A DNA stretch of 64,000 nt from the sequence record MW845758.1. One strand, written 5' to 3'. The notes below the pieces were generated by a model. It had not been told where the DNA came from. It searched no databases and was given only the letters and a program-made list of their open reading frames with translations. Positions within the stretch are counted from its first letter, which is position 1. Every line of letters begins with the position of its first letter. Both the position numbers and the translations under genes were made by a program. Of the stretch, positions 55,034 to 62,751 are shown piece by piece.

Positions 55034-57142
55034 ATGATTTTACGTGAAAGTGATTGGGGCTTGCACCCGGGGTCGGTGATTCACGACACCACCAAAAACA
55101 GACACTTCCTGAAATTTGCCAATACGCTAATGGCGTTAGGTGTGCGTCACTACTACGTGCACTTGGCGCTGCACAATCCGTCGCTCAAAGACGTTGACCC
55201 GTTCGACCCCAACCTCACCATTATCCAGAAAGCGGATATCGTGCAGGAGTGTGCGGAGAACCCGTGGTATTACTTCCGTGAATGTTTACGCGTACCTGCT
55301 GATGGTACCACCGGGGTGCCATTTAAAATGGACCGCGGTAACTTTGCGCTGTATTGGATTTTCTTCAACAACATCGACGTCGCATTGGAGTTCCTGCGTC
55401 AGCACGGTAAGACCATCGGTGTGGCGTCACTGGAATCGTGGTTACTGAGGTTCTTGGAGAACTCCCGTACCATCCACGTAACCAAAGGGCCGGTACTGCG
55501 TGAGGAAACCATCACCACGCTAAAACGTCTACGTGATGGGTTACCGGACTTCCTCTGGCCAACGCACCCTGATGACCCAGACAACAAAGAAGCCTTTGCG
55601 TGTTTGGCCATGGGGAACAAACTGATTACCGCTATCGGTCAGAACGATGAGCAGTCTGCTAACGGTGTGGGTCGTGGACTCACTGCCGGTCGACTGTTAT
55701 CGGATGAAGGCCCGTTCACCAAAAACATCCAGCACATCCTGCCGGCTGCGTTGGGTTCGGGTACCGCAGCACGTCGTATCAACGAAGAGAACGGTGTACC
55801 GTACGGAAACGTGTTCGCCACAACGCCTGGGGACTTGGCGACCGAAGAAGGTCGTTTCATGTACCAGTTGATGACATCAGGGATTTCGTGGGATGAGCGT
55901 TATATCGATATCCCAACGCGCAAAGAACTGATTGATTTGATTCAGCTGAACTCCACGGCGAAGATTCCGCGTATCATGTTCTACGTGAAGTTCAACCACC
56001 AACAGTTGGGTACGACCGATGCCGAGCTGGCAACGATGATTGCCAACGCCACGGGTACACCTGACCAGATCCGTCGTGACTACGGGGGTCAGTGGACCAC
56101 CGGTGGTTTGAACAAACCGTATTCAGAAGAAGATGCGGCAAGGATGACCAAATCACGTCAGCGTGCCGAGTTCAAAGACATCTCTACATCAGGCTATGTC
56201 ACCGACTGGTATTACAAAGAAGATGAAATCGGTTCGAAGCTTCGGGCTCGACACATCATCGGTTTGGATACCTCGGAGGCCGTGGGTCGAGATGCCATCG
56301 CGATGTCTATCGTGAACTCAGAGACGGCAGAACTGGCCGGTAAACTCACGGTAAACGAAACAAACGTCATCGGCTTTGCCATTCACTTGGCGAATTTCAT
56401 GATAAAGTATGAGAACACAGTTTTAATTCTCGAAAGACGCAGCACCGGGTCGTCGGTCGCCGATGCAATTATCTTGCAGCTGCAATCGAAAATCCGTGAC
56501 TTGCACAGACGTCTGTATGTGCGTATTACCCAAGACTACAGTCGTAATGATGAGCTCTACAAAGAGTACCATCGTGGTCCGGGTAACTTCCCAGAGAAGT
56601 TCTGGGATAAGTTCCGTAAATACATTGGCTTCTCAACGGATCAGAATAAACGTCTTAAGCTTTACGGTGAGGTATTCACTATGGCTCTGCGTTTATCCGC
56701 ACACCTCATACGTTCCGGGGAGTTGATAGACCAGATTCTTAGCTTGGTTGAAAGAAGCGGTCGTATCGACCATCAACGTTCAGGGCACGATGACTTGGTA
56801 ATCTCTTGGTTGCTGGCTATGTGGCTGCTCATTTTCGGTAAGAATCTCAATCACTACGAGATATCCAATCACCGTTTAATGATCCGTAACAAAACCATGC
56901 TCGAAGGAGGTGATACCCAAGACGAAGAGTTGTTGGTGGAAGAAGAACAAAAACAACAACAGCTGATGGGTGAAATTGAAGCGGTCATTCGGGATATGCA
57001 GGGGGTTACATGTCCAGTGAAGACCATGCGCCTCAAAGGGCATCTTCAACATCTAGTCAGTCAACTCAACACTGATATGCGAAACGTCGCATCGATGGAA
57101 AGTCTAAAAGACTTGATCCAGCGGCAAAGGATGAATTCATGA
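55034..57142 (+). CDS. terL: Terminase large subunit (phiKZ gp25-like)
   Basis: Walker A LRQHGKT, Walker B LLSDEGPF, motif ATTPG, nuclease IIGLDTSEAVGRD and HDDLVISW. Confidence 0.9.
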   Translation: MILRESDWGLHPGSVIHDTTKNRHFLKFANTLMALGVRHYYVHLALHNPSLKDVDPFDPNLTIIQKADIVQECAENPWYYFRECLRVPADGTTGVPFKMDRGNFALYWIFFNNIDVALEFLRQHGKTIGVASLESWLLRFLENSRTIHVTKGPVLREETITTLKRLRDGLPDFLWPTHPDDPDNKEAFACLAMGNKLITAIGQNDEQSANGVGRGLTAGRLLSDEGPFTKNIQHILPAALGSGTAARRINEENGVPYGNVFATTPGDLATEEGRFMYQLMTSGISWDERYIDIPTRKELIDLIQLNSTAKIPRIMFYVKFNHQQLGTTDAELATMIANATGTPDQIRRDYGGQWTTGGLNKPYSEEDAARMTKSRQRAEFKDISTSGYVTDWYYKEDEIGSKLRARHIIGLDTSEAVGRDAIAMSIVNSETAELAGKLTVNETNVIGFAIHLANFMIKYENTVLILERRSTGSSVADAIILQLQSKIRDLHRRLYVRITQDYSRNDELYKEYHRGPGNFPEKFWDKFRKYIGFSTDQNKRLKLYGEVFTMALRLSAHLIRSGELIDQILSLVERSGRIDHQRSGHDDLVISWLLAMWLLIFGKNLNHYEISNHRLMIRNKTMLEGGDTQDEELLVEEEQKQQQLMGEIEAVIRDMQGVTCPVKTMRLKGHLQHLVSQLNTDMRNVASMESLKDLIQRQRMNS

Positions 57143-60017: not shown

Positions 60018-60521
60018 ATGCTTACTGCAACACCAACGATGGGGCCCGCGGTGAACATCATCTGCCAAGACCGCAGACTGGTGGAGCTGTGCGACCAGTA
60101 TATCATTACCGCCATTTTGAACCACCACCCGCATGTCTATTTTGACACAGCACAGCTACTGGCAGCAGCAGCGGTTCTGCGGAGACTCGAAGGTCGTCTG
60201 ACCATTGTCGAGTTCTGCGATTTCATGGACACGCAACCGGACCTGATGTCAGGCCTCGTGGCGTTAACCCAAGATGGGGTAGGGTCGTTCGACAACGGTA
60301 TCGGAAACTTCCTGGACTTCGGTTCCGGATTCGATGGTGGTATGATGTTTGTCACCAAAGAGCGTTTCGATGCTGTTTGGCAGTTCCTCGGCATGCGAGG
60401 TGTGACTGTACCCTATGCGCTGACACTGTTCAGCAACTGGGACATGAACATCTTCGGTGAAGCGGGGATTTGGGTTAAGCCGATTCAACTAGCGCTGGAT
60501 GGTAACACCATTCATGACTAG
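60018..60521 (+). CDS. Hypothetical protein
   Basis: ATG at 60018 after AGGAG. Confidence 0.8.
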   Translation: MLTATPTMGPAVNIICQDRRLVELCDQYIITAILNHHPHVYFDTAQLLAAAAVLRRLEGRLTIVEFCDFMDTQPDLMSGLVALTQDGVGSFDNGIGNFLDFGSGFDGGMMFVTKERFDAVWQFLGMRGVTVPYALTLFSNWDMNIFGEAGIWVKPIQLALDGNTIHD

Positions 60522-60978: not shown

Positions 60979-61030
60979 CATCCCATTGCTAACCTACCGG
61001 TTAGCAACTGTTTAAATCTCTTCTATCTAC

Positions 61031-61200
61031 GCGTGTGCGCGCACACGCCATTTCCTACAGGATCTTTTTGTTTTATATATAAATATTATTTAATTATATT
61101 TATATAATTATAATAATAGATCATTATACCGCGCCCGCAAGCGCGTGATCCTTATTACTAGATCAATTTCAGGATTGAGAAGAATCGGGTGAGATCGATC
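61031..61200. other. Origin-like element: 18-bp palindrome, 48-nt pure A/T run and six GATC sites
   Basis: GCGTGTGCGCGCACACGC at 61031-61048; A/T-only 61071-61118; GATC at 61061, 61119, 61147, 61161, 61193 and 61197. Confidence 0.55.
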
Positions 61201-61567
61201 CCCAATCCCCTCCTCGGATTTTTTACAGGGTTGTGTAGTATTCTATGCAACTCCGATGTCTCGCCATGAACATCCGAGAGAGTTCCACACCCAACCGGTT
61301 AGCCCCCGGCGGTGTTCGCCGTAGTATCCTGAGTCGTGGTAAACACGTTTTGGCTCCAGTCCCTGTTCCGGACTCTGGCGGTGAGTTTCGGCTCACCGAA
61401 CTTTTCAAAACGTTTGAGTTATTACCTATGGCGAAAACGCATTTGGTTTCTCGAGCAAATCGGGAAACGTAACCAGACTAGCTAGCCAGCTAGTAATCTT
61501 CGACTGGACGATATTCAGCGAAGACTCAGACACGTGTATTCAGGTTACATGTGCCGGAAACCAGTTT

Positions 61568-61590
61568 GCCCCGCGTGCGGGGCCTTTTTC
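61568..61590 (+). terminator. Intrinsic terminator within the gene-free gap
   Basis: GCCCCGC-GT-GCGGGGC followed by CTTTTTC. Confidence 0.6.
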
Positions 61591-61591
61591 G

Positions 61592-62000
61592 AGTGTCTTC
61601 TCGCGAAGACATTGGAAAACGGTGTAATACGGCTTAGCCTTCGGGCAGAGTTCAGGTTCTTGTCTTACCCACCGTCGCTGCTAGGCTGAGCGGCATGCGG
61701 TGGCGGTTTGGGTTGCGGGGAGTTGTCCTGCCATTTGAATCTGACAAGTACCGTGGCAGTCTTGGGTGTGGTGAGGTTGGCGCGCGGCGTGAATACCCGC
61801 GTTCGGCATCTGCCGGTTGATTACACAACCGTGATGGATGGCTAGCCCACCACCCCAGGATGGGGCCAGATTGCATGGTGTGCCTTCTGAGGGGGAGGGC
61901 ACCACGGGGAGTGAGGTGATCACTGTCTTGGCGGCTCGGAAAGACGAGAGGGGTGGGTGTCCACGCTGCGAAGCGTCGATGCCTAGCTGATTATTTTTTA
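61592..62000 (+). ncRNA. Candidate large structured non-coding RNA (family unknown)
   Basis: No credible ORF; dense hairpins including cUUCGg and GCGA tetraloops, a nested multibranch helix and G-U pairing bias on the + strand. Confidence 0.45.
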
Positions 62001-62020
62001 CGGCAACCTTGGGTGTTATG
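61997..62020 (+). promoter_or_regulatory. Putative middle promoter TTTAC-N15-TATG
   Basis: Exact spacing match upstream of the gene at 62044. Confidence 0.6.
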
Positions 62021-62043
62021 TCTAAACCTCAAGGAATGTTACC

Positions 62044-62751
62044 ATGAATCTCGAAGAGCATTACAACAAGCCGCTGACCGTGTCGGGTGTTTGTGAGCTG
62101 CTGGCTGCTGAGCCGTTGTTGTCCACGGTTCCGCAATCCACACTGGCGGCTATCACCAACGTGTATCTCGGTAATCACCACATCAAGTCCGAAAACGCAA
62201 CCAGTCGCTGGGTAACCGTGACCGCGGGCGGTTCTGGCAAAGACGTTTGTGTCGCACAAGGCAAAGGCGATGCTCGCAGCGAAGGTGAAATTTACCAAGC
62301 GCTGCTAGCCAGTGCACTGACCACGGTAATCGAGCGAATTGAAAAAACCGCACCACCTAGCCAAAAATCGATTGAGTTGTTTGTCCCAAGAAACAATCCA
62401 AGCGAGTGTGGTTTTGTTGTGGACGGTGAAGTGATGCCTGTTGCGCCGTTTGTGGAATGGATTCGTGCAGCACAAGACGAATTCCATAATCGCTATGCTC
62501 TTCTGCTGGAACATCACTTCGAGTCGTTGCAGTTCATGCGCTTTCCGAATGACGCAGCAGTTGCGTTGGTCGGTAAACTGCGACAGACCTCAGGCGGTAA
62601 TCGGGTACCGGTGTGCGTAACGTATTTCGAAGGCATCAACGGCGTGTTGAAGGCGATTCACGAAATGGTGCGTGAGCATCAACGTTTGACAACGTACCCA
62701 GATACGTTCGATTACCTCACGTCGATTAACCCGGATGCGGGAGAAGCGTGA
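62044..62751 (+). CDS. Hypothetical protein
   Basis: 235-aa ORF with AAGGA RBS. Confidence 0.8.
   Translation: MNLEEHYNKPLTVSGVCELLAAEPLLSTVPQSTLAAITNVYLGNHHIKSENATSRWVTVTAGGSGKDVCVAQGKGDARSEGEIYQALLASALTTVIERIEKTAPPSQKSIELFVPRNNPSECGFVVDGEVMPVAPFVEWIRAAQDEFHNRYALLLEHHFESLQFMRFPNDAAVALVGKLRQTSGGNRVPVCVTYFEGINGVLKAIHEMVREHQRLTTYPDTFDYLTSINPDAGEA

Follow-up and report, generated by a model that had tools for sequence, protein, structure and literature searches.

A multi-domain non-coding RNA private to SPN3US-like jumbo phages in an unannotated stretch of Erwinia phage pEa_SNUABM_11

What occupies the 1.5 kb or so that the annotation of record MW845758.1 leaves blank between a gene ending at 60521 and the next gene, starting at 62044? 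Positions are those of a 64,000-nucleotide (nt) stretch of this record, called the window here, of which 61000-62100 is identical to record positions 248480-249580 of Erwinia phage pEa_SNUABM_11, an SPN3US-like jumbo phage of 251,480 bp belonging to the genus Wellingtonvirus. A preliminary description, made from the letters alone, had placed a highly structured non-coding RNA of about 400 nt and of no recognized family at 61592-62000, between a terminator and a promoter. Our analysis confirmed that the region is a real non-coding RNA with many hairpins in several domains, private to SPN3US-like jumbo phages, and it is the most strongly conserved non-coding element that we found in this phage group.

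Folding of the + strand of 61592-62000 gave a minimum free energy of -185.1 kcal/mol, as compared with a mean of -157.7 kcal/mol for dinucleotide-shuffled controls (z = -4.63), and none of 100 shuffled sequences folded as well. The reverse complement gave a z of -0.97, and many of the pairs are G-U pairs, workable on the + strand only, in agreement with the strand originally proposed. The segment immediately upstream, 61248-61590, also folded better than its controls (z = -3.87 for the + strand and -2.02 for the - strand). The conserved core spans 61584-61990 (+), about 400 nt, but the structured non-coding zone reaches further upstream than had been proposed. All the hairpins listed in the preliminary description are present at their places, and most of them keep their pairing in relatives by compensatory changes. 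The parts of the locus are as follows.

61223-61247, + strand: promoter-like motif TTACAG-N15-TATG, where the transcription unit of the RNA probably starts.
61248-61565, + strand: 5' extension specific to Wellingtonvirus, non-coding and structured as judged from folding z, indels and compensatory stems.
61568-61589, + strand: P0, the first hairpin of the RNA locus, found by pattern scan; GC-rich hairpin GCCCCGCGTGCGGGGC followed by CTTTTT.
61584-61612, + strand: invariant 5' anchor CTTTTTCGAG, present in all homologues, and the predicted P1 hairpin GTGTCTTC-TCGC-GAAGACAT (61593-61612).
61637-61646, + strand: UNCG tetraloop hairpin GCC-TTCG-GGC (TACG in relatives).
61651-61752, + strand: invariant TTCAGGT, then the P3 domain, closed by GGT/ACC and CTTGTC/GACAAG.
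61669-61703, + strand: hairpin CCACCG/CGGTGG.
61750-61868, + strand: invariant ACCGTGGCAG and P5, which encloses the P4 domain; in P5, TGGC (61754-61757) pairs with GCCA (61865-61868).
61759-61861, + strand: P4 domain, a long imperfect helix of about 61759-61781 with 61840-61861.
61782-61802, + strand: hairpin GCGCGG/CCGCGT, inside the P4 domain.
61814-61831, + strand: hairpin CGGTTG-ATTACA-CAACCG, inside the P4 domain.
61877-61903, + strand: hairpin GGTGTGCCTTCT-GAGGG-GGAGGGCACC (GGTGTGCC.../...GGCACC), at the position of P6/P7 in other genera.
61906-61925, + strand: P8 region, with a complement of the 16S rRNA tail, GAGGTGATC (61913-61921).
61926-61953, + strand: 28-mer TCTTGGCGGCTCGGAAAGACGAGAGGGG, invariant in most homologues, which holds hairpin P9 (CTCG, 61935-61938, with CGAG, 61945-61948).
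61951-61990, + strand: P10, a long hairpin with a GNRA tetraloop (ACGCT-GCGA-AGCGT, 61963-61976), then GCTGA.
61992-62020, + strand: T-run and second promoter-like motif, TTACGG-N13-TATG (61998-62020), which precedes the gene at 62044-62751 and lies outside the RNA.

Among three Wellingtonvirus sequences (pEa_SNUABM_11 and loci L016 and L024; loci are cited by such numbers throughout), 8 of the 138 predicted pairs are changed on both sides, about 30 are changed on one side with pairing kept, and 6 are broken or gapped. Thus, within this genus, GCGCGG/CCGCGT becomes GCGCAG/CTGCGT, and CGGTTG/CAACCG becomes CAGCTG/CAGCTG. For the 3' module, 12 of 37 pairs showed compensatory changes in 11 sequences, from which we built a covariance model (R1) that contains no member of Wellingtonvirus or of the Huxley subgroup. 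R1 found the Huxley subgroup at E ~1e-24 and, as its sole match in the 64 kb, positions 61837-61990 of the window at E = 3.9e-18. When 23 sequences were aligned to the model, 95.9% of cells paired, as compared with 38-49% in controls in which the pairing partners were slid by 1-3 columns; 23 of the 37 pairs were changed on both sides (2-9 in the slid controls) and the covariation score was 0.505 (at most 0.09 when slid), values that none of 500 shuffles reached. The Wellingtonvirus rows are forced in P6/P7 of this alignment, so that the 61877-61903 hairpin can be equated with P7 of the other genera only tentatively; helices P9 and P10 are free of this effect. Among helices 5 and 6, which correspond to P10, 8 of 13 pairs are changed on both sides with 97-100% of cells pairing, and the loop reads GCGA, GAGA, GTGA or GGGA in all homologues.

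Similar behaviour was observed towards the 5' end, although a family-wide alignment of the 5' and central domains with MAFFT and RNAalifold was blurred and yielded no single structural alignment. In the P5/P4 domain of 15 sequences from other genera, 9 of 18 pairs showed compensatory changes, with the end pairs of P5 reading UA in 11 sequences and CG in 4, and UA in 9, CG in 5 and UG in 1. The P3 domain ranges from 22 to 111 nt between genera, and its closing helix changes sequence completely while pairing is kept (CTTGTC/GACAAG, CCTGTC/GACAGG, ACTCGG/CCGAGT and ACTCAG/CTGAGT), which supports the CTTGTC/GACAAG pairing suggested earlier. The stem of P0 likewise has a wholly different sequence between genera, yet in every case it pairs and lies directly against CTTTTTCGA. 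At the base of P1, the U-run of the 5' anchor pairs with a conserved A-run (CGACAAAG; GGAAAA in pEa_SNUABM_11). The + strand therefore forms hairpin domains P0-P10, and covariation preserves their pairing across four genera.

Two pairings in the preliminary description had to be given up. Close relatives lack the 5' arm of CTGCCA/TGGCAG, and the TGGC has another partner, GCCA at 61865-61868; the long-range pairing of CTAGGC with GCCTAG is broken in L016 and L024. We also considered kissing loops between CCTAACAC and TGTAGAAC, which could form in principle, but only one of the two loops varies, giving no covariation support, and a long-range pairing of CTTTTTCGAG with CTCGGAAAG, both strands of which are invariant and hence show no covariation either way. 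The 5' extension was aligned with its counterparts in L016, L024 and Wellington, from which it is set apart by one indel of 26 nt, others of 1 nt, and stems with compensatory changes. One of its hairpins, CACGTGT-ATTCAGGTT-ACATGTG (61530-61555), exposes in its loop TTCAGGTT, a sequence that is invariant in the core (61651-61658), and its stem covaries in Wellington (CACTCG/CGAGTG).

How widely is this RNA distributed? By blastn, the region was found in 61 phage records, all of them SPN3US-like jumbo phages of Erwinia, Salmonella, Escherichia and Proteus, and the RNA is present in all four of the related genera, Wellingtonvirus, Machinavirus, Erskinevirus and Seoulvirus. Only members of Wellingtonvirus align over the full length (at about 80%), whereas in the other genera the last 50-90 nt align. 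When the DNA upstream of this match was aligned, the other genera showed the same invariant blocks in the same order as pEa_SNUABM_11: in the first half, a hairpin of variable sequence with CTTTTTCGAG, then TCGACAAAGC, CCTAACAC, TTCAGGT and GGTACCGTGGCAG; in the second half, GAACTTACC, a hairpin with GTGATCC, TCTTGGCGGCTCGGAAAGACGAGAGGGG, the GNRA hairpin and GCTGA, where conservation ends. The first block and the 28-mer are 309-433 nt apart across the homologues, and the Huxley type, at about 410 nt, is a naturally compact form. When the core of the 28-mer was used as an exact pattern, 12 loci were found in IMG/VR, each on a contig from these phages, and none in the genomes of 185,579 species of bacteria and archaea; metagenomes gave 11 contigs, 9 of which are from such phages; the matches in L032 and L040 were discarded as chance. 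Since the pattern occurs only in these phages, the RNA family is private to the SPN3US-like group. The element is found in each of the 61 related phage records and in every metagenomic relative, and no allele without it was seen. A search for distant relatives through the upstream 377-amino-acid (aa) protein returned Wellingtonvirus-level loci only.

The genes that flank the RNA belong to PHROG families of unknown function, without a Pfam match of note. The family of the downstream gene differs between genera and neighbouring proteins are 40-57% identical; towards the Wellington group the RNA retains about 80% nucleotide identity, as compared with 52-57% for the next protein.

No reading frame is conserved in the region. 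The longest open frames of the homologues agree neither in strand nor in phase or length, close relatives are separated throughout by frame-breaking indels of 1 and 2 nt, and substitutions are spread evenly over codon positions (12/16/11 and 12/12/7). Open reading frames (ORFs) of the RNA region matched nothing in Pfam or PHROG, including one of 75 aa in the 5' extension, and minus-strand ORFs of 74 and 80 aa were rejected because they have no family match and suffer frame-breaking indels in close relatives. That the locus encodes a small protein is therefore highly improbable, although two frames deserve mention. One comprises 20 codons, from an almost invariant TTG at 61928 to a TGA at 61990, and follows a strong ribosome-site-like sequence by 10-14 nt; its in-frame TGA, within GCTGA, is kept in most homologues. 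However, 1-nt insertions shift this frame in SPN3US, EC001 and Parshik, the 28-mer shows no synonymous variation, and the second half of the frame evolves by RNA-style changes, those in P10 being compensatory as RNA and radical as peptide. The other is a longer frame, annotated as gp278 in Huxley and gp279 in Parshik, which is open for 133 codons in four Huxley-type sequences; there too substitutions are even over codon positions, and no frame is common to the genera. Hypothetical proteins that overlap the RNA or its 5' extension on either strand have been annotated in Huxley (gp278, L012:1152-1565), Parshik (gp279, L030:852-1247), phiEaH2 (L006:1532-1660), pEa_SNUABM_43 (L026:942-1148) and Wellington (gp291 and gp292, L002:2202-2935). 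As their frames are not conserved, they are probably mis-annotations.

Does the RNA belong to a known family? We searched the window with the 4227 models of Rfam 15, which include RNase P, tmRNA, SRP, 6S, riboswitches, T-box, GOLLD, ROOL, OLE, HEARO, raiA and self-cleaving ribozymes. At gathering thresholds there was no match in the whole window, and at E<=10 the segment 61000-62200 gave chance-level matches only, all outside or marginal to the RNA. ARAGORN found no tRNA or tmRNA in the window, in keeping with the lack of such hallmarks remarked on at the outset. Resemblances of ACGAGAGG to the sarcin-ricin loop, of GGTACCGCG to a T-box and of CGGAAAGAC to 23S rRNA were judged to be chance, without model support. 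A full-text literature search returned no description of such an RNA, and parts of it could be among the unnamed entries in a catalogue that lists over 10,000 short RNA motifs from viruses, with a mean length of 67 nt (PMC10690425). The suggestion of an undescribed large phage non-coding RNA thus stands: it is non-coding, covaries across four genera, and has neither a match in Rfam 15 nor a description in the literature. The novelty concerns the family or class of RNA; as a general phenomenon, large phage RNAs without a known function have precedents. In six homologous loci Rfam 15 matched a tRNA-Trp gene and, below threshold, int-alpA in the Wellington insertion described below. The tRNA-Trp gene lies 0.6-1.2 kb downstream of the RNA in Seoulvirus (L004:2141-2216, L005:2207-2279, L008:1775-1847, L007:2553-2628 and L025:2363-2438), and the 64-kb window of pEa_SNUABM_11 has no tRNA gene.

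Natural variants indicate that the RNA is modular. In Wellington and Kwan about 610 nt are inserted between the 16S-complementary segment and the 28-mer (L002:2870-3480; window 61921/61925), comprising the gene of a 169-aa HNH endonuclease (PF13392; PHROG HNH families) and flanks of about 100 nt. L024, nearly identical to Wellington, has no insertion and differs in about 25 nt at the junction, a pattern that looks like recent homing with co-conversion beside a highly conserved target. Just upstream of the HNH ORF, L002:2867-2932 matches int-alpA with 31 bits, as compared with a gathering score of 35.8 (E = 0.005). In pEa_SNUABM_6 (L027:1001-1265), about 138 nt are missing, from the 5' strand of P5 to the 5' strand of P7, with the junction at a short direct repeat, TAGCCCC; either the central domain was lost naturally or, possibly, the genome was misassembled.

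The endonuclease gene raises the question of whether the element is a mobile intron. A group I-like self-splicing intron, or another mobile ribozyme, would share with this RNA a length of about 400 nt, many helices, an HNH ORF in a tolerant linker and a near-identical relative without the ORF (L024). However, the ORF is found in Wellington and Kwan only and fits a free-standing insertion equally well, and the gene does behave as one, with altered flanks and a position next to the conserved 28-mer. Moreover, neither Intron_gpI nor any other intron model matched, even at E<=10, the flanks are non-coding with no exons and no interrupted gene, and every relative carries the RNA, so that there is no intron-less allele. 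We rejected group I and group II introns as candidates, and consider any reading of this kind extremely improbable.

Alternatively, the conserved sequence could act as DNA, as a packaging site, a protein-binding site or a homing endonuclease target, with the hairpins incidental. The invariance of the 28-mer in most homologues would suit such a site, and the HNH gene of Wellington and Kwan adjoins the 28-mer in the pattern expected of a homing endonuclease target. Dozens of compensatory changes, the many G-U pairs (C-A mismatches on the other strand), the strand-specific folding signal in pEa_SNUABM_11 and some 400 nt of conserved helices that a DNA site would not need make this very unlikely.

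What, then, might the RNA do? The segment that follows P8 is complementary to the last 9-12 nt of 16S rRNA (GAGGTGATC at 61913-61921 in pEa_SNUABM_11, GGAGGTGATCCA in Asesino), with the E. coli sequence taken as the tail. Out of about 12,800 windows on both strands of the 64 kb, 61913-61921 is the best complement (-19.1 kcal/mol), and the complementarity is kept in 23 of 23 homologues, at -19 to -31 kcal/mol against the 18-nt 3' end of 16S rRNA. The only other site of comparable complementarity in the window is GAAGGAGGTGATACCC at 56891-56930 (-19.0 kcal/mol). In most homologues the complement is paired, as the 3' side of a hairpin, with a 5' side that itself looks like the 16S tail, while in pEa_SNUABM_11 and Wellington the hairpin around it is built differently and the sequence is kept, which points to a role of the sequence itself. 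Variation between A and G in its G(A/G)TC core fits pairing to the U of GAUC, whether in 16S rRNA or in a second copy of the RNA. The 28-mer that follows is identical across genera except for base N of TCTTG(N)CGG and the loop of P9 (GAAAGA, GGAAGA or GAACAGA).

These features could belong to an RNA whose very target is the ribosome. The GGAGGTGATCC-like segment would pair with the 16S tail while the 28-mer and the GNRA loop dock, and the RNA would thereby capture or reprogramme host 30S subunits for the phage early in infection, or would serve as decoy to a factor attacking the 3' end of 16S rRNA. We regard this as unlikely, and no RNA-only ribosome effector of such a kind is known in any phage.

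To consider how the RNA is expressed, we turn to a motif, TTACR-N12-16-TATG, that occurs eight times in the 64-kb window, always on the + strand (8484, 17821, 21109, 56662, 57208, 61223, 61998 and 63425), as compared with 3.2 matches expected. A T-run often comes before it and TAAAC after it, and its spacing is unlike that of sigma-70 promoters; matches to the latter are weak and fall within the A+T-rich block upstream, and were set aside. We propose the motif as a candidate phage-specific promoter. SPN3US-like phages are thought to encode their own multisubunit RNA polymerases, and the polymerase involved may not be that of the host. Two copies bracket the RNA (61223-61247 and 61998-62020), and a slightly looser form occurs once upstream of the RNA in 21 of 21 homologous loci, at a distance from the 5' anchor that is typical of the genus. 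Measured from the motif start, this distance is shortest in the Huxley type (about 61 nt), rises to about 110 nt for both Erskinevirus and Seoulvirus and to about 230 nt for the pEa4 type, and is longest in Wellingtonvirus (342-371 nt). In pEa_SNUABM_11 the non-coding transcription unit thus probably starts near 61248.

The hairpin and U-run at 61568-61589, previously read as a terminator that bounds the RNA on its left, are instead a conserved part of the locus, P0. By its sequence P0 looks like an intrinsic terminator, with a GC-rich hairpin directly followed by CTTTTT. In the Huxley type only about 15 nt separate it from the sole upstream promoter-like motif, and an efficient terminator there would silence both the RNA and the next gene; P0 is hence better read as the RNA's 5' stem-loop or as an attenuator. 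As a general phage terminator motif CTTTTTCGAG was rejected, with two exact copies in 64 kb and 10 one-mismatch matches as compared with 5 expected; the second exact copy (36358, minus strand) has nothing related nearby.

At the 3' end, 8 of 21 genomes (SPAsTU, pEa29, pEa4, pEa9, Huxley, Parshik, pEa10 and pSal04) have the next gene's ribosome site and ATG within about 25-30 nt of the RNA, with no promoter-like motif between, so that the RNA would be a leader there. The other 13, including pEa_SNUABM_11, have a T-run and then the promoter-like motif or a close variant before the next gene. Most genomes show no U-run or terminator after P10.

Our preferred reading, which we hold tentatively, is that of a leader-type RNA that heads a gene block and whose 3' module engages the 30S subunit or a conserved factor; it may also be processed to a stable species. 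Transcription would run rightward, with the RNA as the first 400-740 nt of the transcript that heads the block; in pEa_SNUABM_11 the transcript would start near 61248 and carry the conserved core at 61584-61990. The RNA would act through its invariant single-stranded segments, and its working part would be the 3' module, with the 16S-complementary GAGGTGATC, the 28-mer and the GNRA hairpin. The likeliest role of this module would be the capture of 30S subunits or of a conserved protein, by which expression of the genes downstream is controlled or boosted; a scaffold or sensor would be provided by the 5' and central domains. The RNA could then be cut out and persist as a stable RNA. Known phage leader RNAs (HK022 put, structured 5' untranslated regions and ribosome standby sites) are comparable in that they follow a promoter, here a promoter-like motif, and precede the first gene of a block, and in that this RNA would also act as RNA and has a masked ribosome-site-like sequence. 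It is five to ten times larger than HK022 put, and its fold is unrelated.

Several observations weigh against a leader role as so described. The family of the downstream gene is not the same from genus to genus, which argues against a gene-specific regulator, and in the 13 genomes with a promoter-like motif after the RNA the next gene would be independent of the leader. In most homologues part of the 16S complement is hidden in a hairpin, and its spacing does not suit a normal ribosome site: the one start codon close by (TTG, in an unconserved frame) is 10-14 nt away, and the true start of the gene about 120 nt. pEa_SNUABM_6 is without the P5-P7 region, and Wellington and Kwan carry about 610 nt inside the RNA, so the full fold is not needed for laboratory propagation. 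Finally, the folding energies of homologues are modest (Huxley, z = -2.85 for the + strand and -2.05 for the - strand; SPN3US, z = -1.76), and with this weaker signal the case for structure rests on covariation and comparative evidence.

Some of the same observations would suit a stable RNA that acts independently and in trans (as the scaffold of a ribonucleoprotein, as a ribozyme or as a self-assembling ornate RNA like GOLLD, ROOL or OLE), is freed by processing or weak termination and lies next to a gene incidentally. Many invariant segments are unpaired (CCTAACAC, TTCAGGT, ACCGTGGCAG, GAACTTACC and the 28-mer), GNRA and UNCG loops are present, the RNA is conserved far above its flanking genes, of which the downstream one varies between genera, and the next gene has its own promoter-like motif in 13 of the 21 genomes. 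In addition, the G(A/G)TC core is self-complementary, as part of an 8-nt palindrome, GTGATCAC, in pEa_SNUABM_11, and ornate phage-associated RNAs that form homo-oligomers are known (bioRxiv 10.1101/2024.12.08.627333). Like GOLLD, ROOL and OLE, this RNA is large (at least 400 nt) and phage-borne, with many helices, strong covariation, many invariant unpaired nucleotides, a function that is unknown and, in Seoulvirus, a tRNA gene within about 1 kb; unlike them, it is restricted to enterobacterial jumbo phages, does not match their Rfam models and stands directly upstream of a gene on the same strand. Against a trans-acting RNA speak the lack of a terminator after P10 in most genomes, the 8 genomes in which the RNA abuts the next ribosome site, and the viability of natural deletion and insertion variants. 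On balance we regard it as the main alternative to a leader-type RNA, possible but rather doubtful.

The preliminary description had also noted an origin-like locus nearby, which corresponds to an A+T-rich palindromic block about 500 nt upstream of the RNA.

61060-61125 (within 61025-61150): A+T-rich palindromic block between GC-rich inverted repeats GCGTGTGCGCGCACACGC and CGCGCCCGCAAGCGCG.

Huxley has a comparable block, likewise upstream of the RNA. The RNA could accordingly be a replication-origin RNA, whose G-rich 3' end (GAGAGGGGTGGGTG) would form a persistent hybrid beside A+T-rich DNA and prime or activate replication in the manner of ColE1 RNA II. As with RNA II, there would be a structured non-coding transcript of several hundred nt with a G-rich segment, in a stretch that is non-coding over its entire 1.5 kb, and A+T-rich sequence does follow the G-rich 3' segment. 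The palindromic block, however, is upstream and not at the 3' end, there is no similarity to RNA II in sequence or structure, and covariation spans the whole RNA, beyond the needs of a primer. PHROG and Pfam matches of the neighbours revealed no replication gene near the RNA, and GC skew is flat with no switch near it, which in itself supports neither view of an origin. We consider this explanation distinctly unlikely, and return to the leader-type RNA as the reading that we prefer.

Few large structured RNAs are known, and new classes of them have opened lines of research, as riboswitches, ribozymes and, recently, RNA-only assemblies have done. The present family occurs in a well-studied phage group, to which SPN3US belongs, as do many phages of Erwinia amylovora that are being considered for the control of fire blight, and existing annotations ignore the element or overlay it with spurious hypothetical proteins. 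It also offers advantages for study, as the Huxley form has only about 410 nt, natural variants mark dispensable modules, and the link to the 16S tail is directly testable. Since SPN3US has a genetic system, the function of the RNA is accessible to test in that phage.

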